Below are positions 26,290-47,308 of a stretch of DNA of 64,000 bases, piece after piece. The stretch covers positions 3,100,001-3,164,000 of the forward strand of contig JAMWBK010000001.1 of assembly GCA_029953675.1 (NCBI GenBank). Reading direction: 5' to 3'. The DNA comes from Rhodosorus marinus CCMP1338 (taxonomy: Eukaryota; Plantae; Rhodophyta). Position numbers and translations under genes: made by a program. Within the stretch, counting starts at the first letter, position 1. The number at the start of each line of letters is the position of its first letter. The notes under the pieces were generated by a model that saw only the letters and a program-made list of their open reading frames with translations, was not told the DNA's origin and searched no databases.

Positions 26290-27338
26290 ATGAAGCAGGG
26301 ACTGCTGTTGGTAGTGGTGGCAACCGCCATTGGCCTGGCCACCGCTCAGGGAGTTGTCAAGGATGACCCTGTTAGTAAGATCAGGATGCCCATTGGTGAG
26401 TTTTCTCATCTTCTCGTGGATTCGCAGTGTGTAGTGACCTTTGGCTCACAAGCACATCGCCTTCTTGAAATTTTCCAGGGTTCGAATTTACGGACATGTC
26501 TGCTGGGGCCAACAGCAAAATTTTCGTTGTTGGCACTGCTGGGGGAAGGGGTGAGCTGCAAGAGATAAACACGCGGAAGGAGACGCGGTCTTTGTTGAAG
26601 CGTTTTAACAGAGTTCTCACCACTATCCTGTACCTGCCATCAAAGGATTGGTTTGTAGCGAGTGAAGAAAAGCCTAACTTTGTTGTGATGAGCAGGGAAA
26701 AGGGACTCACGATTCTGGAGCGATGCCGTCTGCCAGTGGTTGCCCCACCCACACGCATGATCGTCGATGATGAAGTTGTTTACTTTGGTGGCAAGGACAA
26801 GCGGTTCCTGTACAGCATCAAGGTCAAGAAGCTTCTAGACTGTGAAATCAAAGCAACTGAGCTCACCTTCATTCCCAAGGGAAGGGAGGACAAGGGCACC
26901 GGCCAAGCGTACGTGCAGGATGTCGATTCTTACAAAGGACTACTAATCCTCGGAGTGATCAAACCCACAGACACATCTGTCGCTGACTCCGCCCTGTACT
27001 TGTACGACCCGAGGAAGGACAAGGGAGTGCTCTTGCTCAAGAACGATGCAAACCTCAAGTACTTGACGGGAATCGTTCGAGATGGAAAGACTCTCTATGC
27101 GGCTGTGAAGAAGGGCGTTGCCAACCCAACCAAGAACAACGAGAACAGAATTAGCGCTTGGAAGCTCAAGGGTTCTTCAATCACGACTATCTCGGCTTCT
27201 TACCTGGGCAGGTTCCAGAGTGGGTCTGCAGGAAGCAACTTTGATGCTCTCATGTTTAGCAAGGGTCGAGTGTGCGTGAGTGCCACTCTTGCTGGACGGG
27301 CCCAGATTGTATGTCATCCAGGAGATGTTTTTGGGTGA
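26290..27338 (+). CDS. Secreted protein, paralog 2 of 3 (~321 aa)
   Basis: Exons 26290-26395 (MKQGLLLVVVATAIGLATAQ..KDDPVSKIRMPIG) and 26479-27338. 83-bp phase-1 intron GTGAGT..CCAG at the same position as in paralog 1. Confidence 0.88.
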
Positions 27339-28388: not shown

Positions 28389-30989
28389 CTAGAACACCCA
28401 CTTGGCAACTTTGTGAAGCAACACGACGAGATTCGAAGAGTTTGTGTGAAGCAGATCCGGAACCGTAAATCCGAGGCGGAAGAGGATCCTAAACGGCATC
28501 AACAACCATGCCGCAATGGCTGGGGGTACCATAGTTGTGTAGCATGAAGCTAGAACCCCATCAACGACAATATCCCCTTGCTCAGTGTGAGGATTAAATG
28601 CGCCCTTCGCAACAACTCTGTCAACGGCGTCAATCGCTACAGCTCCATTCATGCTTGTCACAAGCCTATCGCCCACAATGAAGTCACGGGCGGCTCTGAG
28701 CAGACCTTCTTCCGTTACTAGGTAGTGAGATCCGGATGCTCTAAAGAAATCTCCGTTGGCAAGTTTGAAGGACAAGTAGCCAGCAAGGATTTCAGAGTCC
28801 TTGTGTCCCATCATGAAAACGCTGCTGAATCCAGTGGATGTACGGATCTTGTCCCCAACTGCTACTTGGTCCATGCGAACTGTCTCCCCAGTCTCCAGCT
28901 GAACGGTTGCCGATCCTGGGAAGCACACTGGCTCAGGTGACGGACTTGGGGTCGCGGTCGGGCTCGCGGTCGGGCTCGCGGTCGGGCTTGCGGTCGGGCT
29001 CGGGCTCGCGGTCGGGGACACGGACGGAGGAGGACTGGTGCTAGGAGACGCCTCTCCATCCGCGACTTGGTCCTCAGCAGCCCAGATTAATGCAGCATAG
29101 TTGTAGAAAGCGTCAACTATAGCGTCACGATCCCCAATCGATACATCAGAATACAAGGGTCCATCGCCATTTGCCATGCCATCGAAACCAGCAGCATCCA
29201 AATTGTCGAACATTGATACAATCTCCTGGTACGAATTCTGCAATCCCGTAACCGTCGCAGCCGGCAGCAGAGGGTAGAACGGACTCAACTGTAGTAGTCA
29301 AACAAGAAACACTCAGCCATTAGCACTTCTCCCACTACTCTCGCTGAAGTCAAACCCAGCCTTCCTTCAGCCACCATCATTACCTGACTTTCAATTCCCT
29401 TCGCGTTGTTCGTGAAGATTAGAAGAGAGTGGTCACTCCACGTCTCCTCCTCAGACGATATCTTCTTGGCCGGAACCTCAACGGAAAGTGCTTTCAGTCC
29501 GTCCCAGGTGTTCTCAAGGTTGAAATTGTCAGGATCGTTTTCGGCGTTGTCAATCTTGTCACACAGACTGTCGATTGTGCCCTGAACATCAGTTACAGCC
29601 GCCCTCGCACAGTCCAGATCGTCGTCCCGAAACAAGCAGTACTCAACGACGTGCATGCCCCTGAACTCCTCGTCCAGCTCGCCTTTGTTGTGGGCGTACG
29701 GTCTCGAGTCAATGTTTGTGTCCTTCGCAACGTTTACACATAACACATAGGTTCAGTTCAGTGCTGCTTCGGGCAGAAGATCCCTGGACCGCGAACACTA
29801 CGCGTTCTCTTGGATTTCTTACCTCCTCCTCGAAAGATCCAGCAAGCACTTCGATCTGTTCGTACGGTGGCCTCGCCGCAACATAAGCATCCCTCGATGC
29901 GTCCAGGTCACCAGAGTCGATCGCAGTAAGCAGATCAGCAGCCAGCTCCTGCTGAGACGCACACAACTCCACAAACTTGGCAACACCTTCAAGAACAGCT
30001 TGGTTCTGTCGCTCAGTCGCTCGGGAGGTAACTAGCGAACCCATCTGCACGCGCGTCGCTCCCTCAGGAAGATTCTCCGCTTCCTCACCATCTCGTACCT
30101 CATTGTTGGCCGCCTCAAGCGCAAGGAAGAACGCATAGATGTTGTCCGAGATCAGCTTCCGGTCCTCCACAGACACTTCCGAGTAAGGCTTCGCAGCGGC
30201 TCCCTCGCCACCGTCAAAGCCGTTCTCAGGGTCCACCTGATTCATCGTGTCAACCATTGTGTTGAAGGCCGCTTCCAGAGCTTCGTACGTCTCCGCTTCC
30301 ATCTCATCTTCGAACGGTGAGATCACAGACCATATACCCTTCAAGTTCTCCCGGAAAATCAGGAGGGACAGGTCGCTGTACGTTTCCTCTTCCGAGGCAA
30401 TCTTCTTAGACCCAATCTCCACCGTGAGCCCCAGTGCTCCGTCCCAGGTTTTCCCTCGGTTAAACACCTCCGTGCTACCCTCATCCAAGACGTCGCAGAG
30501 CTCGTTGATCGTTCTCCGGAGCGGACGACCATAAGGTCTCGCACACTCAATGTCCTCCTCGCGATAAATGCATGCCTCAATTCGGTGGAATCCAACAAAG
30601 TCGTCCCCAAGCTCCCCTGTGTCGAACGCGTACGCCCGAGCATCAATGGCTTCGTCCTATTAGCAGTTCGAGGCGAAACTTTCAGATTCAACATAGCAAG
30701 TCCTTTGTCACAGGACAGTGATTGCTCAAACCCATCAACCTACCAGATCTTCGAAGCACGCTGCAAGGACTTCAATCTGCTCATACGGCGGGCGAGCAGC
30801 CTGATACGCAGCCTTGACCGCGTCAAGGTCGTCCCCGTCAAGTGCATCCACCAACTCCGCAACACTTCGCCTCTGGATCTGACACTGCTCCGCGAGCGCC
30901 GCTACTCCAGCATCCACACGAGGCTGGAGCTCCTGCCCAGTTACGCATGCGAGGAGAATTACACACGCAAAGAGAACCTTGAGCTTCAT
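28389..30989 (-). CDS. Secreted tandem imelysin/EfeO(FEA1)-like iron-binding protein fused to a Hedgehog-type Hint module (~772 aa, 4 exons)
   Basis: Exons 30989-30744, 30656-29823, 29722-29384, 29288-28389; three phase-0 GT-AG introns of 87, 100 and 95 bp. Signal peptide MKLKVLFACVILLACVTG. Two repeats of ARPPYEQIEVLA..D..ID.R..G(F/M)H..E..KKI.SEEET(Y/W)SD. (PTAS)n linker, then CFPGSATV..GD..H..GDIVVDGVLASCY and a hydrophobic tail. Confidence 0.88.
28950..29016 (-). repeat. 12-bp coding tandem repeat encoding the Pro/Thr/Ala/Ser linker
   Basis: (GCGGTCGGGCTC)n on the + strand; translates as SPTASPSPTASPTASPTASPTAT on the - strand. Confidence 0.9.
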
Positions 30990-35471: not shown

Positions 35472-37565
35472 TCACTTCTTTTCAAATCTGCTCAGTGCTT
35501 CTTCTCTCGCGTTTCCGAAATCACATGTCCACTGCCCCCGGACGTTCCTAATTCTGCACATATCCCCATGTAGTTTGAAGTTGTTCCTGATATGACATAT
35601 CAATCCAGTTGCCCTTATAAAATCGTCTGGACCCAGCCCACGGATCGGATTGTCGCCAGCGGCCAAGAACACTCCCTTCTCCGCTCTGCATCGCTCGGAA
35701 CGTGCCAGGGCGGTATTAGATTTACACCGATTCCTTGTTGGGTCTAGCATGCAACATTCTTGAGAATCAGATGTGTTATCCGTTCTGAACCCGTTGCACC
35801 GAAGACAGTAGAACCAGCGGCCTCTTCTTCCCAACCCAACACAAGCCATTCCAGGTGGACAGAGGCCACGGCATCCATCCTCTCCGGGAGGTTCCGAGGG
35901 TACGGGCGTCGGAGAGGGAGTAACTCTGCTCCCACAAGCTGTTTCCGATATTCCCACTTCCTCCCAGGCGTCGATAACATGGTCTAACAAGCTCATACCC
36001 TGGGCAACACTCGAAGATGCGATTCTCAAATCGCAGAAATCGGCATCCACTGGAAGGCTCCCGTAAGCTTTCCAGATAATTGCCATGGCTTTCTCGATCC
36101 CAATTCCCTTAACCGTGGAGCCTGTCCTCCTCCTCGCGTTTGCGTTAGTTCCACCTTCACTTAGGAGGTAGAACCAATGATTGACAATCCCATTGTTCTT
36201 GTGCACCCCGCCGTTATCACCTTGGCTTCTATCGTAATCCTCAAAGTGGCTCGGATGCCCAAACGCTCCCGGGTCCTTCATGCTCCTCAAACCCCCGGCT
36301 TCGAAGAAAGCTTTTTCCCCATATATCCAGTTGTAATCTCCAATCAATTCAAAGAGAAAAGACGCCGCAAATATATCCGAAAATGCCTCGATAATTGCTC
36401 CTGATTCGTGCCTCGGGATTAGCTCGACTAGCTCAAAACCGACGGCATGACCAATTTCATGAGCAACAATGCCACCGTCTGATGACAGCGGCCTAATTGT
36501 CTTGCCATCATCTCCACTACCGAAACCGAAGACAAGACCGTCCCAGAATGCGTCCTGAAAATCCTTAAACAGCCTAACGACTCCTTCCATTGCACCATAA
36601 TGCTGCATGAAATCGAATTTGAACTGACTGAGAAGGTACTCGTCCACCTTCTTCATCCAGTACTGAGCGTCCACGACTTCAGCCTGCTTCTTACTGTCCC
36701 AAATGTCATCGGAATCCGTGGCAATCTGCAAAGTCCCTCCCGAGTACCTGGCGTCCCATGTAATCTGTCGATTATCATCTGCATACATGTAGAACAGTGG
36801 GCTGAAAAAAGATGTGAGCCCAGAGAGATCGCGTTCTTCATGGCAAACCCCAAACCCAACCCCAGAAGCAAAATTCAAGTTATTGTGCACGCCCAAAATC
36901 GATCCCGTGCCCGTCAGGGCAGCATCAATCCAATATGTATGCCAGTGTGCTAGCGCCCTTTCGTGCACGATGCAGATCGGCCTCTGCTGGAGTGGATCAA
37001 TGAATATTCTAGTCTCGTATGAAAAAGAATTGCTACCGGGTTTCATATCCAACGACCTGCCTAAACGAGCACCAGTCTCGCAATCGTCCCTGCTCTTGAC
37101 CACTGGCGGAAGCACGTCGAAGTCACAGTGCGTATGAGCTTTTCCGAAAATGCTGACTACGGCTCCATCCCTTTTGATAACAGTCAACACGCCACCAAGA
37201 ATCTGAACTCCATCGAACCACTCACTAAAAACTGTCTGGCTCTCCGTTTGAGACTCGACGACCCACCTTCTAGTCGAGGCATTCGCTGATAGCAGTTCAT
37301 CTGCGACTTCTCTAGACCCGTACTCATTTCCAATGACATCAATTATTCGTGGCTTACACGCTGACAATCGGCGCAATGCAGCCCGATCGTTCAAAGCGAG
37401 GTGCTCCGTTTGCTCAATCTCCAAGTCACGCAGTTCGTTCCAATCTGCGTTGACTCCATTGAGACAAATTGCAAGCGCAAACATCCAGAGACATACCGCA
37501 GAAAACATCAAGGAGGACCATGTGCTTCGCATCGTACTCAAAGATCTATCTCTACGAGACTTCAC
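35472..37565 (-). CDS. Secreted M4-family (thermolysin-like) zinc metalloprotease with Cys-rich C-terminal domain
   Basis: Signal-like N-terminus; propeptide (F.EWFDGVQILGG); HEIGH, IEAFSD and DNGGVHKNNGIVNHWFYLLSEGG motifs; PSPTPVPSEPP linker; Cys-rich tail. 697 aa, no intron; true start Met uncertain. Confidence 0.92.
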   Translation of the reverse strand: MKSRRDRSLSTMRSTWSSLMFSAVCLWMFALAICLNGVNADWNELRDLEIEQTEHLALNDRAALRRLSACKPRIIDVIGNEYGSREVADELLSANASTRRWVVESQTESQTVFSEWFDGVQILGGVLTVIKRDGAVVSIFGKAHTHCDFDVLPPVVKSRDDCETGARLGRSLDMKPGSNSFSYETRIFIDPLQQRPICIVHERALAHWHTYWIDAALTGTGSILGVHNNLNFASGVGFGVCHEERDLSGLTSFFSPLFYMYADDNRQITWDARYSGGTLQIATDSDDIWDSKKQAEVVDAQYWMKKVDEYLLSQFKFDFMQHYGAMEGVVRLFKDFQDAFWDGLVFGFGSGDDGKTIRPLSSDGGIVAHEIGHAVGFELVELIPRHESGAIIEAFSDIFAASFLFELIGDYNWIYGEKAFFEAGGLRSMKDPGAFGHPSHFEDYDRSQGDNGGVHKNNGIVNHWFYLLSEGGTNANARRRTGSTVKGIGIEKAMAIIWKAYGSLPVDADFCDLRIASSSVAQGMSLLDHVIDAWEEVGISETACGSRVTPSPTPVPSEPPGEDGCRGLCPPGMACVGLGRRGRWFYCLRCNGFRTDNTSDSQECCMLDPTRNRCKSNTALARSERCRAEKGVFLAAGDNPIRGLGPDDFIRATGLICHIRNNFKLHGDMCRIRNVRGQWTCDFGNAREEALSRFEKK

Positions 37566-45487: not shown

Positions 45488-47308
45488 ATGCATCTCTGCA
45501 CGTCCTTCGCCGTAGCTCTGTGTCTCATGTCCGTGTTATGGGCAGTGGAAGGACGAATACAGAGCTGCCAGAACGCGCTGGAGGAGAATCAGGCGGCTCA
45601 GTTTGAAGAGTCGTGTGTGCTCTTGGTGGATTCGAAGAATACGGAGAGGGGAATGGTGTGTACCACAACCGCGAGAATGGGCTCTAGTCCGAACAAGCGG
45701 AGACGCTGCTTGGCTGCCACAATTACGGTTAATTCTGGCATCATTAACCGAGTCAAAGCGGGTTTGTATAAGGACTGTTCAAGCGTTCTTCAGCCTCTCA
45801 AGTTCACCAAGGACAAGAAAATTAAGCCGAACAAAATGTTCAAGGAGTTCACGACTACTATCTGTCCAGAAGAAATTAAAACCGGAAAGACGTGCTGCGG
45901 TACAAACGTGTGCATGATCCTTGAGATTTCAAACCAGCTCGGGGCCAGGAACGTGCAACTCCGTCCAAGACCTGCTTTCCGTTGCCGACGGAAGATCGGA
46001 CGGCACCAAGCTTGTGATTTGGCATTTTCTTGCCTCAACGTCATCTACGCAAACAAGAAGAACCCGAAAACTAGGGGAACAGAAGGTGCTGATCTCATCT
46101 ACGGTACGGATGGAGATGACAAAATATTTGGAAATGGAGGCGACGACATCATCTACGCGAGGGGGGGGAAAGACCTCGTCGATGGGGGCGACGGGAACGA
46201 CCTCTTGTTCGGCGGAGAAGGAGGGGACAAAATTCTTGGAAATTTCGGCAATGATACGATCCATGGCGGCAAAGGTGCTGATGAGGTCAAAGGTGGGGTG
46301 GGCAACGACAGGATCTATGGAGATGAAGGCAGCGATACTCTGTTCGGAGAGAAGGGTATGGACTTGGTTGTGGGTGGCAAAGGGAAGGACAACCTGAACG
46401 GAGGCATGGACTCAGACAAGATAAGAGGTGATGAAGGAGATGATTATATCACCGGCGGTTCAGGTGAGGATATTATTTTCGGGGGTGACGATAACGATAC
46501 GATAAAAGCTGGAAGTGGTTCTGATCGGATCCACGGCGGAACCGGCGCGGATCTGATCTTCGGAGGCTCTGGGAATGACGAGGCGCGGGGAGAGGACGGT
46601 GCAGATAGGATGTACGGCGGTGAAGGGACCGACAACCTCAACGGCGGGGATGGGGATGATTTTCTCAGTGGAGAAGATGGCCGCGACTTACTGTATGGTG
46701 CAGACGGTGCAGACGAAATTCTAGGAGGTTCTGGACAGGACAAGATAGACGGCGGGAAGGGAGATGACGAACTGCAAGGTGGTACCGGTCCTGACTTTAT
46801 CCTTGGAGGAAGTGGAGAAGACAGAATGTTCGGTGGAGAGGGCGACGATCGGATGCTTGGAGGAGAAGGAAACGACTCAATGTACGGGGGTGAAGGCAAT
46901 GACACAATTCGAGGAGAACTTGGAGATGACTCAGTCAACGGTGAGCTCGGCGACGACACCATCGATGGCGGAAGGGGACGTGATTTCTTGGAAGGTGGTG
47001 ATGGGGCTGACGCCATCACGGGCGGAAATTTTGAAGGGGATGTCATCAACGGCGGGAATGGGGGGGATACAATCAAAACCAGCGTTGGGAGTGACGTGGT
47101 GCAAGGTGGTGGGGGAAATGACGTCGTCCGGGATCAGGGCGGGAACAATCTCGTTTTCGGGAATGAGGGAGACGATGATATTCTGGTCGGTGAAGGGGAC
47201 GATCGGGTTTATGGAGGGCCGGGAGACGATAGGATCGCATCTAACCAGGGATTCGACCAACTGGAGGGTGGCCCGGGAAAAGACACTATTATTTACGGAA
47301 TATCGTAA
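45488..47308 (+). CDS. Secreted RTX-like (hemolysin-type Ca-binding GGxGxD) repeat protein with Cys-rich N-terminal domain
   Basis: Signal peptide MHLCTSFAVALCLMSVLWAVEG; ~180-aa Cys-rich region; roughly 45 nonapeptide repeats (e.g. GGDGNDLLF, GGEGNDTIR). 606 aa, intronless. Confidence 0.92.
   Translation: MHLCTSFAVALCLMSVLWAVEGRIQSCQNALEENQAAQFEESCVLLVDSKNTERGMVCTTTARMGSSPNKRRRCLAATITVNSGIINRVKAGLYKDCSSVLQPLKFTKDKKIKPNKMFKEFTTTICPEEIKTGKTCCGTNVCMILEISNQLGARNVQLRPRPAFRCRRKIGRHQACDLAFSCLNVIYANKKNPKTRGTEGADLIYGTDGDDKIFGNGGDDIIYARGGKDLVDGGDGNDLLFGGEGGDKILGNFGNDTIHGGKGADEVKGGVGNDRIYGDEGSDTLFGEKGMDLVVGGKGKDNLNGGMDSDKIRGDEGDDYITGGSGEDIIFGGDDNDTIKAGSGSDRIHGGTGADLIFGGSGNDEARGEDGADRMYGGEGTDNLNGGDGDDFLSGEDGRDLLYGADGADEILGGSGQDKIDGGKGDDELQGGTGPDFILGGSGEDRMFGGEGDDRMLGGEGNDSMYGGEGNDTIRGELGDDSVNGELGDDTIDGGRGRDFLEGGDGADAITGGNFEGDVINGGNGGDTIKTSVGSDVVQGGGGNDVVRDQGGNNLVFGNEGDDDILVGEGDDRVYGGPGDDRIASNQGFDQLEGGPGKDTIIYGIS

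Follow-up and report, generated by a model that had tools for sequence, protein, structure and literature searches.

The minus strand of the window (the whole stretch of 64 kb that was analysed) carries a gene of four exons, the coordinates of which are collected in Table 1 together with those of the encoded features. All three introns are of the GT..AG type and of phase 0, and their removal gives a CDS of 2319 nt, stop included, which is free of internal stops and encodes a protein of 772 amino acids. This protein consists of a signal-like N-terminal segment, two Peptidase_M75 (M75) domains in tandem, a stalk rich in Pro, Ser and Thr, and a C-terminal Hog module of the Hedgehog type. Its start position matches that of the Rhodosorus proteins P0001 and P0002 in an alignment. 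When the two M75 repeats were aligned with each other, intron 2 was found to lie in repeat 2 at a site homologous to that of intron 1 in repeat 1. All the motifs quoted in the original prediction were located in the spliced protein, namely GFHRIE, ASEEETYSD, GMHVVE, SSEEETWSD, V594/C595-FPG, ASGSHY, VVDGVLASCY and AIAAWLLMPFRILF.

Table 1. Features of the M75-Hog gene and of its predicted product, in positions of the window.
Feature	Position	Strand	Remarks
Exon 1	30744-30989	-	aa 1-82; start codon 30989-30987; signal-like segment; M75 repeat 1 begins here, its first helices carrying Y62, E70 and E73
Signal-like hydrophobic N-terminus	30936-30989	-	aa 1-18
Intron 1	30657-30743	-	87 nt, GT..AG, phase 0; directly before the D83 codon
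Exon 2	29823-30656	-	aa 83-360; remainder of M75 repeat 1 (D83, D87, H106-x-x-E109, S170-EEE-T), acidic inter-repeat linker, beginning of repeat 2 (Y340, E348, E351)
Intron 2	29723-29822	-	100 nt, GT..AG, phase 0; directly before the D361 codon
Exon 3	29384-29722	-	aa 361-473; core of M75 repeat 2 (D361, D365, H384-x-x-E387, S450-EEE-T)
Intron 3	29289-29383	-	95 nt, GT..AG, phase 0; CTAAT branch-like site and pyrimidine tract; in-frame stops
Exon 4	28389-29288	-	aa 474-772 and stop (28391-28389)
Last helices of M75 repeat 2 (exon 4)	to about 29067	-	to about aa 547
Pro/Ser/Thr stalk (exon 4)	28926-29066	-	aa 548-594
Predicted autocleavage site V594/C595	28923-28928	-	Cys1 codon TGC at 28925-28923
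Hint module (exon 4)	28536-28925	-	aa 595-724; Pfam Hint
His635 codon	28803-28805	-	Hedgehog Asp46 position (general base for sterol attack); alignment to 6td6, 1at0 and 6tyy
S658-G-S-H661	28725-28736	-	counterpart of TxxH (Hedgehog T69/H72)
Cys722 codon	28542-28544	-	counterpart of Hedgehog C143 (branched-thioester residue)
ARR/SRR-like tail (exon 4)	28392-28535	-	aa 725-772; alignment to Drosophila Hh-C

The gene model was compared with transcript contigs of two close Rhodosorus relatives (L001 and L002), which show 75-85% nucleotide identity to the window across the aligned gene segments. Introns 1 and 2 are missing from both contigs at exactly the predicted borders, and each contig extends from exon 1 to exon 4 on one RNA. 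Approximately 75 nt downstream of the stop, L002 ends in a short A-run, as would be expected of a poly(A) tail. The same fusion was found as a single uninterrupted ORF in Porphyra umbilicalis (L003), in a TARA scaffold (L004) and in a Logan contig (L005). The four-exon model is borne out by the intact spliced ORF and, for introns 1 and 2, by the relatives' transcripts, whereas the possibility of two separate genes is ruled out by the transcripts that run through exon 4 and by the uninterrupted ORFs of the three other organisms. The M75-Hog fusion gene is thus confirmed.

The N-terminal part of the protein matched the Pfam family Peptidase_M75 (PF09375, E=1.1e-30) over two stretches, which share 46% identity as repeat 1 and repeat 2. 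The sequence matches in the PDB were EfeO (7wgu, E=1.8e-18), EfeM (7q1g) and Algp7 (3at7), all with E-values of about 1e-17 to 1e-18, and a Foldseek search with an AF2 model found the M75 fold of Algp7 and of EfeM, each with a TMt of 0.85. The prediction had placed two imelysin/EfeO-like domains in tandem here, marked by HxxE and EEE motifs, and these matches uphold it. The additional label FEA1 had to be withdrawn, as a Pfam hmmscan of the 772-aa protein gave no match to the FEA1 family even at E<=1, and a relationship was rejected on this ground; the domains are Peptidase_M75 domains of the 'M75-only' EfeM type. FEA1 and FEA2 of Chlamydomonas and the phytotransferrin ISIP2a of diatoms serve these algae in iron assimilation and are secreted or lie at the cell surface; the window protein resembles them by functional analogy only, a sequence relationship not having been detected.

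The metal sites were mapped using the EfeM residues listed in PMC9174327 as the reference. Site III corresponds to Y62, H106, E109, E172 and E173 in repeat 1 and to Y340, H384, E387, E452 and E453 in repeat 2, and site IV to E70, E73, D83 and D87 and to E348, E351, D361 and D365, respectively. Four of the five site IV residues of EfeM (E90, E93, E97, D103 and D107) are present in each repeat, the equivalent of E97 being Ala77 or Gly355, and nine of the ten ligands of sites III and IV are kept in both repeats. The mapped residues are invariant in an alignment of eight fused homologues. With the bacterial EfeO, EfeM and Algp7 proteins (periplasmic components of the EfeUOB iron transporters; 7WGU, 7Q1G and 3AT7) the window protein shares the helical-bundle fold and, in both repeats, the HxxE motif, a GEEDRY-like loop (SEEETY or SEEETW) and most of the acidic site IV. 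It differs from them in being eukaryotic, duplicated in tandem, fused to a Hog module and devoid of an E97 equivalent, and it has neither the EfeO-I cupredoxin domain nor adjacent EfeU/EfeB genes.

The C-terminal part matched Pfam Hint (PF01079) from aa 594 to 751 with E=5.7e-21 and 75.5 bits (cutoff 29.7); together with the M75 score, this is well beyond what chance would give. Its sequence match in the PDB was Drosophila Hedgehog (6td6), and the top Foldseek matches of its AF2 model were 1AT0 (TMt 0.78) and 6TYY (TMt 0.81), with a probability of 1.00. The Hedge signalling domain of Hedgehog is absent, Peptidase_M75 being the only Pfam family N-terminal to Hint. The protein is approximately 23-24% identical to the Hedgehog C-terminal domain (Hh-C; 1AT0, 6TD6 and the D46H form 6TYY) and shares with it the Hint fold, Cys1 directly after the predicted cleavage site, a TxxH-type SGSH motif with S658 and H661 aligned to T69 and H72, the counterpart of C143, and a stretch that aligns with the first helix of the SRR. 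The differences are a His instead of Asp at position 46 and, before Cys1, a beta-branched Val where Hedgehog has Gly. A Hint module with Cys1 and a block-B His had been expected downstream of the stalk, and the codon given for the Cys was exact. The tail after the Hint domain, about 50 aa long compared to about 70 aa in Drosophila Hedgehog, is predicted to form two helices (pLDDT 36-65 in the AF2 model). A tail had been predicted at this place; its start aligns with the SRR helix (AIAAWLLMPFRIL in the alignment with SLAHWGLAPMRLL of Drosophila Hh-C), and its dN/dS of 0.19-0.29 across three Rhodosorus lineages is indicative of purifying selection.

To relate these residues to those of the family, 121 related Hog domains were aligned. 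Cys1 is present in all of them, as are the His of the TxxH-type motif and a Thr or Ser at its first position (Ser in 35/121). The C143-position Cys kept by the window protein occurs in only 17/121, most relatives having Thr instead, and the chemistry of the family may therefore differ from that of Hedgehog, for which the role of C143 has been described (PMC12054796). In one R. marinus strain, represented by two assemblies (L001/P0058), Cys1 is replaced by Tyr (TAC), so that cleavage appears to be dispensable or lost there. A His at the Hedgehog Asp46 position had been predicted and was found as His635 by alignment to the Hedgehog structures; the inference that the nucleophile may therefore not be a sterol is weakened and was dropped as an argument, because His is the rule in the family and no peculiarity of this protein (120/121 related Hogs, the named ones being red-algal) and because 6TYY, an engineered D46H Hedgehog with the substitution at exactly the position of the natural His635, retains autoprocessing in cells.

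Hog relatives were gathered by a full HMMER scan, as a word-index search that took only the Hog domain as its query gave almost nothing. More than 100 cluster representatives show 35-48% identity to the window Hog; ten of these were looked up, and four came from named organisms, belonging to Purpureofilum and Porphyridium. Only two of the 114 close Hog representatives carry M75, and the remaining ones carry pentapeptide repeats, pectin acetylesterase, spondin, fasciclin, Cu monooxygenase, temptin or nothing recognisable. The window protein follows the plan common to non-metazoan Hogs, in which a secreted domain at the N-terminus is followed, often after a linker rich in Thr and Pro, by a C-terminal Hog. 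The combination of M75 with Hog is found again in other red algae, as judged from their sequences. As to a single origin of the fusion, neighbour-joining trees were built from the M75 part and from the Hog part; they did not recover the fused proteins as a monophyletic group, but were themselves without resolution. P0011 is a possible further relative, the transcript of which is incomplete or frameshifted.

The red-algal paralogues of the cargo are mostly devoid of Hint and end directly after the second M75 domain. Hint-less tandem-M75 proteins, such as the 'Efem/EfeO family lipoprotein' of Gracilariopsis chorda (P0024) and the 'probable iron uptake system component EfeO' of Coccomyxa (P0044), share with the window protein the two-repeat cargo (34-44% identity) and identical invariant metal residues. 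They end after repeat 2 or carry a GPI-signal-like tail or a fasciclin domain, whereas the window protein continues with the stalk and the Hog module. The green-algal tandem-M75 homologues P0053 and P0062 have GPI-signal-like tails, and P0038 has a fasciclin domain; as these are attached to the same cargo, tethering looks like a recurrent need of tandem-M75 proteins.

Hog domains were described from red-algal ESTs as early as 2008 (Burglin 2008, PMC2362128), with N-termini that were unidentified at the time, and kelch-Hint genes have been described in Cyanidiales (PMC9812998). No description of an M75-Hog fusion was found in the literature on EfeO or imelysin together with Hint, hedgehog or algae, nor were biochemical tests of algal Hog domains found in the literature. 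The architecture had been put forward as undescribed, which the literature searched bears out for the fusion; the red-algal Hog was already known, and orthologues were present in the databases without a name, those of Porphyra and Pyropia being annotated only as 'hypothetical' or 'Hint domain-containing' proteins. The novelty thus lies in the cargo, for which no description was found, and not in the module itself.

We consider it somewhat better than an even chance (a probability of about 0.55) that this red-algal gene, from a Rhodosorus-like stylonematophyte, encodes a secretory precursor, composed of signal peptide, two EfeM-type domains, Pro/Ser/Thr stalk and Hog, which would be processed by self-cleavage into a sterol-anchored metal binder of the cell surface. 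The Hog would probably cut the metal-binding half free, and a sterol would perhaps fix this half to the cell surface. By analogy with the chemistry of the family, Cys595 would attack the carbonyl of Val594 in the secretory pathway (an N-to-S acyl shift, with S658 and H661 assisting), and the acyl group may then move on to Cys722. With His635 as the general base, the thioester would be resolved by a hydroxyl nucleophile. A sterol adduct may be formed at this step, since D46H Hedgehog is capable of autoprocessing and red seaweeds have cholesterol as their main sterol (PMC5104453), and the latter makes a sterol the likeliest nucleophile. The N-terminal fragment of about 576 aa would be freed with a lipid ester on Val594 and be held at the outside of the plasma membrane, from where the stalk, probably glycosylated, would extend both M75 domains into the wall or matrix. 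There, the conserved HxxE/EEE pockets (site III) and ExxE..D..D pockets (site IV) could bind iron, as Fe(II)/Fe(III), or a different divalent metal and hand it to a permease. The Val before Cys1, the short and poorly modelled tail, the scarcity of C143 among the relatives, the Tyr of the R. marinus strain, the intron 3 kept in the relatives' transcripts and the lack of a permease gene nearby weigh against this reading.

An anchored product of this kind presupposes that the fused frame is expressed. It is very unlikely, in our view, that it is not, and that the functional product is a protein of about 480-500 aa made from an mRNA retaining intron 3, with exon 4 as a decaying remnant. Intron 3 with its in-frame stops is present in the transcript contigs of both relatives, and if it was kept in the mRNA the protein would therefore truncate within M75 repeat 2; gene callers annotated M75 and Hint as two distinct ORFs in these relatives, database searches found no fully spliced Rhodosorus protein, and the replacement of Cys1 by Tyr in R. 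marinus would fit a remnant. However, exon 4 encodes the final two to three helices of repeat 2, which align with repeat 1 and would be missing from the truncated protein, and Cys1 is kept by both the window protein and L002. The exon 4 ORF is intact in all three Rhodosorus lineages, with a dN/dS of 0.10-0.29 that points to purifying selection on its parts, and other red algae have the fusion without introns. Across the three lineages, intron 3 has preserved its GT, branch-like site, pyrimidine tract and AG, whereas its interior has diverged and shows indels that are not multiples of three. Removal of the intron gives a continuous alignment with repeat 1 and with the uninterrupted orthologues. 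Splicing of intron 3 is thus supported by its splice signals, by the repeat-to-repeat alignment and by the dN/dS of exon 4 (0.1-0.3), and coding read-through is excluded by the in-frame stops, by its length, which is 95, 96 or 94 nt depending on the lineage, and by an interior that drifts between conserved splice signals. If the Hog is made, it might still only cleave, with water as the nucleophile, and act as a release or quality-control module that leaves the M75 fragment soluble in the wall or matrix without a lipid anchor. This we regard as rather unlikely. As most of the cargo paralogues are Hint-less, a soluble form appears to be functional; the tail is short and modelled with low confidence, C143 is absent from most members of the clade, and Burglin 2008 (PMC2362128) noted as unknown whether Hog domains other than that of Hedgehog add sterol at all. 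Yet hydrolysis alone would not need the general base that is present as His in nearly all relatives, the tail begins with an SRR-like helix and is under purifying selection, and lipid or adhesion tethers recur on the M75 cargo in other algae.

A related matter is what the anchored or released half would bind. Iron is not certain, because binding of alginate, Cu and Zn by M75 proteins has been reported as well: Algp7, one of the nearest relatives of known structure, was deposited as a protein that binds alginate, and EfeM binds Zn and Cu in vitro, its role being described as still unclear. The cargo might thus not be a component of iron uptake, but a matrix or wall protein the M75 domains of which bind another metal (Cu, Zn or Mn) or an anionic wall polysaccharide, and the junction of the same cargo with a fasciclin adhesion domain in P0038 would be in keeping with this. 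No FTR1/EfeU-like permease was detected in the 64-kb window, either by Pfam on the ten largest ORFs or by a scan for the REXXE motif, and none lies within 10 kb of the Porphyra orthologue; a ferroxidase gene was not found nearby either. Eukaryotic genes, however, need not cluster with those of their partners, the characterised EfeO/EfeM systems are all iron transporters, and the EfeM ligands, apart from the Ala or Gly at E97, occur in both repeats and do not vary among the fused homologues, so that we consider a cargo unrelated to iron uptake unlikely.

Since the discovery of Hog modules in protists and red algae in 2008, it has been an open question what they do in organisms other than animals. 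As their N-terminal cargos were mostly unrecognisable, nobody could say what the non-animal Hogs process, or why. Here the cargo can be recognised as a metal binder of the EfeM type, cholesterol is produced by the host lineage, and the catalytic residues correspond to those of a working D46H Hedgehog, which offers a clean system to ask whether sterol or lipid transfer by Hog predates Hedgehog. The protein is also a candidate surface component of iron or metal acquisition in red algae, the nori genera Porphyra and Pyropia included. We propose only tentatively, and with the odds against it, that red algae esterify cholesterol onto a tandem EfeM-like iron binder by Hedgehog-type chemistry and thereby make a sterol-anchored nutrient-capture protein. 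If true, protein cholesterylation would be demonstrated for the first time outside animals, and the transfer of sterol by a Hog that uses His as its general base would be an old and general function, later inherited by Hedgehog.

The studied gene, on the minus strand, is assembled from four exons (Table). Its spliced CDS of 2319 nt contains no internal stops, has three GT..AG introns removed and encodes the 772 amino acids of the original prediction; all the motifs quoted there were found in the spliced protein, and the Cys codon lies at the position it had given. Pfam analysis of this protein detected Peptidase_M75 (imelysin, E=1.1e-30) in two stretches and Hint (PF01079, E=5.7e-21, residues 594-751), with nothing else significant, which confirmed both the proposed imelysin-like tandem domains and the Hint module.

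Table. Features of the M75-Hog fusion gene and neighbouring ORFs (window positions)
Feature	Position	Strand	Remark
Exon 1	30989-30744	-	starts with ATG at 30989
Intron 1	30657-30743	-	GT..AG, phase 0
Exon 2	30656-29823	-	
Intron 2	29723-29822	-	GT..AG, phase 0
Exon 3	29722-29384	-	
Intron 3	29289-29383	-	GT..AG, phase 0
Exon 4	29288-28389	-	
Cys595 codon	28925-28923	-	
Downstream neighbour	26496-27338	+	280-aa ORF
M4 metallopeptidase	35472-37565	-	697-aa uninterrupted ORF
RTX-repeat protein	45488-47308	+	606-aa ORF

The nearest database proteins, P0002 (Rhodosorus marinus, 83% identity) and P0001 (89%), come from the transcript assemblies L001 and L002, and point to a Rhodosorus-like red alga as the source of the window. 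Introns 1 and 2 are missing from both contigs precisely at the predicted borders and are experimentally supported in these relatives. Exon 3, intron 3 and exon 4 are unbroken on both, and L002 terminates approximately 75 nt past the stop in a short A-run consistent with a poly(A) tail, which places exon 4 within the same transcription unit; the two separate genes envisaged as an alternative in the original prediction do not agree with transcripts running through exon 4. Independent evidence for the fusion is provided by uninterrupted ORFs with two M75 repeats and a Hint domain in Porphyra umbilicalis (L003, 826 aa), a TARA metagenome scaffold (L004, 720 aa) and a Logan contig (L005, 754 aa), all intronless. 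Introns 1 and 2 occupy homologous sites in the two M75 repeats, directly before D83 and D361 (the EfeM D103 equivalents), and share phase 0, which suggests that an intron at this position is older than the tandem duplication. The convergent downstream neighbour has no Pfam match and shares 92% nucleotide identity with the distal end of L001 (3710-4051), a contig that therefore joins both genes via either overlapping 3' ends or assembly read-through. Two other ORFs of the window encode a thermolysin-type metallopeptidase (Peptidase_M4 and M4_C), a bacterial-type secreted protease approximately 4.5 kb from the gene, and a protein with RTX calcium-binding nonapeptide repeats (HemolysinCabind, 16 matched stretches, E=5e-82), which is unusual for a eukaryotic alga; the 2 kb around the latter show a strong positive GC skew (0.24).

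Although introns 1 and 2 had been removed, intron 3 was retained in both independent assemblies, L001 (1592-1687) and L002 (1634-1727). Its retention introduces a premature stop within M75 repeat 2 and explains why gene callers annotate M75 and Hint (P0058) on these contigs as two ORFs. We nevertheless read it as a genuine intron, because its GT donor, CTAAY branch-like site, pyrimidine tract and AG acceptor are kept in three lineages with diverged interiors and near-equal lengths (95, 96 and 94 nt), it contains in-frame stops, and its removal aligns repeat 2 continuously with both repeat 1 and the orthologues across the junction. Exon 4 is moreover under purifying selection: dN/dS is 0.35-0.70 in the stalk but lower in the M75 tail (0.18-0.24), in Hint (0.10-0.29) and in the tail after Hint (0.19-0.29). 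The retention could reflect incomplete splicing, assembly preference or regulated retention, for instance in an iron-replete MMETSP culture.

Sequence matches to the N-terminal half in the PDB are E. coli EfeO (7wgu, 1.8e-18), P. syringae EfeM (7q1g) and Algp7 (3at7), and the two repeats are 46% identical over 248 residues. EfeM site III consists of Y82, H126, E129, E189 and D190, spanning the HxxE and GEEDRY motifs, and its acidic site IV of E90, E93, E97, D103 and D107; in Sphingomonas EfeO, these residues are the ones that bind Sm3+ (PMC9174327). Mapping by HMMER alignment to 7q1g gave Y62, H106, E109, E172, E173 with E70, E73, D83, D87 in repeat 1, and Y340, H384, E387, E452, E453 with E348, E351, D361, D365 in repeat 2. 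The E97 equivalent is the only site residue lost (Ala77 and Gly355). No mapped residue varies among the fused homologues; in 29 tandem-M75 proteins without Hint from red and green algae, the histidines and most of the acidic residues are likewise invariant. Since a cupredoxin domain is absent, both repeats belong to the "M75-only" EfeM type. Of the earlier FEA1/EfeO-like label, the EfeO-like part stands, whereas FEA1 found no support in the Pfam profile search. From family knowledge, the bound metal would most probably be iron; no FTR1/EfeU-type permease was found in the window or adjoining the Porphyra gene.

For the C-terminal part, the PDB matches are Hedgehog sequences of Drosophila and human. 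An AlphaFold2 model built from eight homologues, of moderate overall confidence (mean pLDDT 69.5; Hint blocks 77-92), gave as best Foldseek matches 1AT0 (Hh-C, TMt 0.78), 6TYY (0.81), EfeO, Algp7 (0.85) and EfeM (0.85). In the alignment with Drosophila Hh-C, Cys595, His661 and Cys722 correspond to C1, H72 and C143, and AIAAWLLMPFRIL aligns with the first helix of the sterol-recognition region, SLAHWGLAPMRLL, whereas His635 replaces D46, as had been noticed, and Ser658 replaces T69. A full HMMER scan over 1.84 billion representatives yielded over 100 Hog domains that share 35-48% identity with that of the studied protein; an organism was named for 4 of 10 looked up, the red algae Purpureofilum and Porphyridium. 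When 121 Hog sequences were aligned, fused homologues included, all had Cys at C1 and His at H72, and 120 had His at position 46, the rule within the clade. At position 143, Thr (88 sequences) predominates over Cys (17) and Ser (9), and the protein studied belongs to the minority that keeps C143. This large clade in effect presents a natural D46H/C143T Hedgehog active site on many different N-terminal domains. PDB entry 6TYY is exactly the D46H mutant of Hedgehog, for which the original 2019 JACS study reportedly found near-wild-type cholesterolysis and broader sterol tolerance. Its autoprocessing persists in 293T cells (PMC12054796), and red seaweeds have cholesterol as their major sterol (PMC5104453). 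Since D46H autoprocesses, His is clade-wide and cholesterol prevails, the argument from His to a non-sterol nucleophile is not compelling, and a sterol adduct on the cleaved fragment is plausible.

Hog domains with N-termini matching nothing were reported earlier in red algae, and a secreted "Ur-Hog", possibly adding a sterol-like moiety, was proposed as the ancestor (Burglin 2008, PMC2362128), and kelch-Hint genes with Thr/Pro/Ala linkers are known in Cyanidiales (PMC9812998). The Pfam partners on 114 close representatives include pentapeptide repeats, pectin acetylesterase, spondin, fasciclin, aspzincin, Cu monooxygenase and temptin, with M75 on only two (the Bangiales cluster P0007, and P0061). 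This diversity makes the Hog domain here a promiscuous C-terminal module, with tandem M75 as one of its cargos. NJ trees of the M75 and Hog parts both failed to separate a single from a repeated origin of the fusion.

Most red-algal tandem-M75 paralogues lack any tail. In green-algal P0053 and P0062, a Ser-rich segment leads into a hydrophobic tail of the kind found in GPI-anchor signals, P0038 ends in a fasciclin domain, and stalk plus Hog represents a fourth form. The GPI-signal-like tails and fasciclin are alternative surface-tethering solutions for this cargo, and their occurrence lends circumstantial support to the idea that the C-terminal appendage may serve as a tether.

The Cys1 codon is TGC in the window and L002 versus TAC (Tyr) in L001 (approximately 2009-2011) and P0058, a single change seen in two assemblies of one Rhodosorus marinus strain. 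Together with the somewhat higher Hint dN/dS in comparisons with this lineage (0.18-0.29 versus 0.10 otherwise), it suggests that autoprocessing was lost or relaxed there.

We therefore propose, with a probability of about 0.55, a secretory precursor whose Hog domain would cut at V594|C595 and probably place a sterol ester on the freed tandem-EfeM fragment, which would be held at the cell surface on its P/S/T stalk and capture iron or another metal. Counted against this are Val in place of Gly ahead of Cys1, the shortness of the tail after Hint, the Tyr-carrying strain and the retained intron 3. Cleavage by hydrolysis alone, leaving a soluble product, is distinctly less probable. Overlapping with it, and slightly less probable again, is a ligand other than iron: EfeM takes Zn and Cu in vitro (PMC9174327) and alginate binding was the first function ascribed to Algp7, whereas family knowledge speaks for iron. 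That the fusion is not expressed, or that exon 4 is decaying, is improbable, with the constraint on exon 4 on one side and the retention of intron 3 in the relatives' transcripts on the other.

Literature searches for EfeO/imelysin with Hint, hedgehog or algae found no description of this architecture, and database orthologues are annotated merely as "hypothetical protein" or "Hint domain-containing protein". Both parts are well known and red-algal Hogs had already been described; the fusion is not categorically new. It does offer a useful and directly testable case for the function of non-animal Hog domains, and a lead on metal uptake in red algae.
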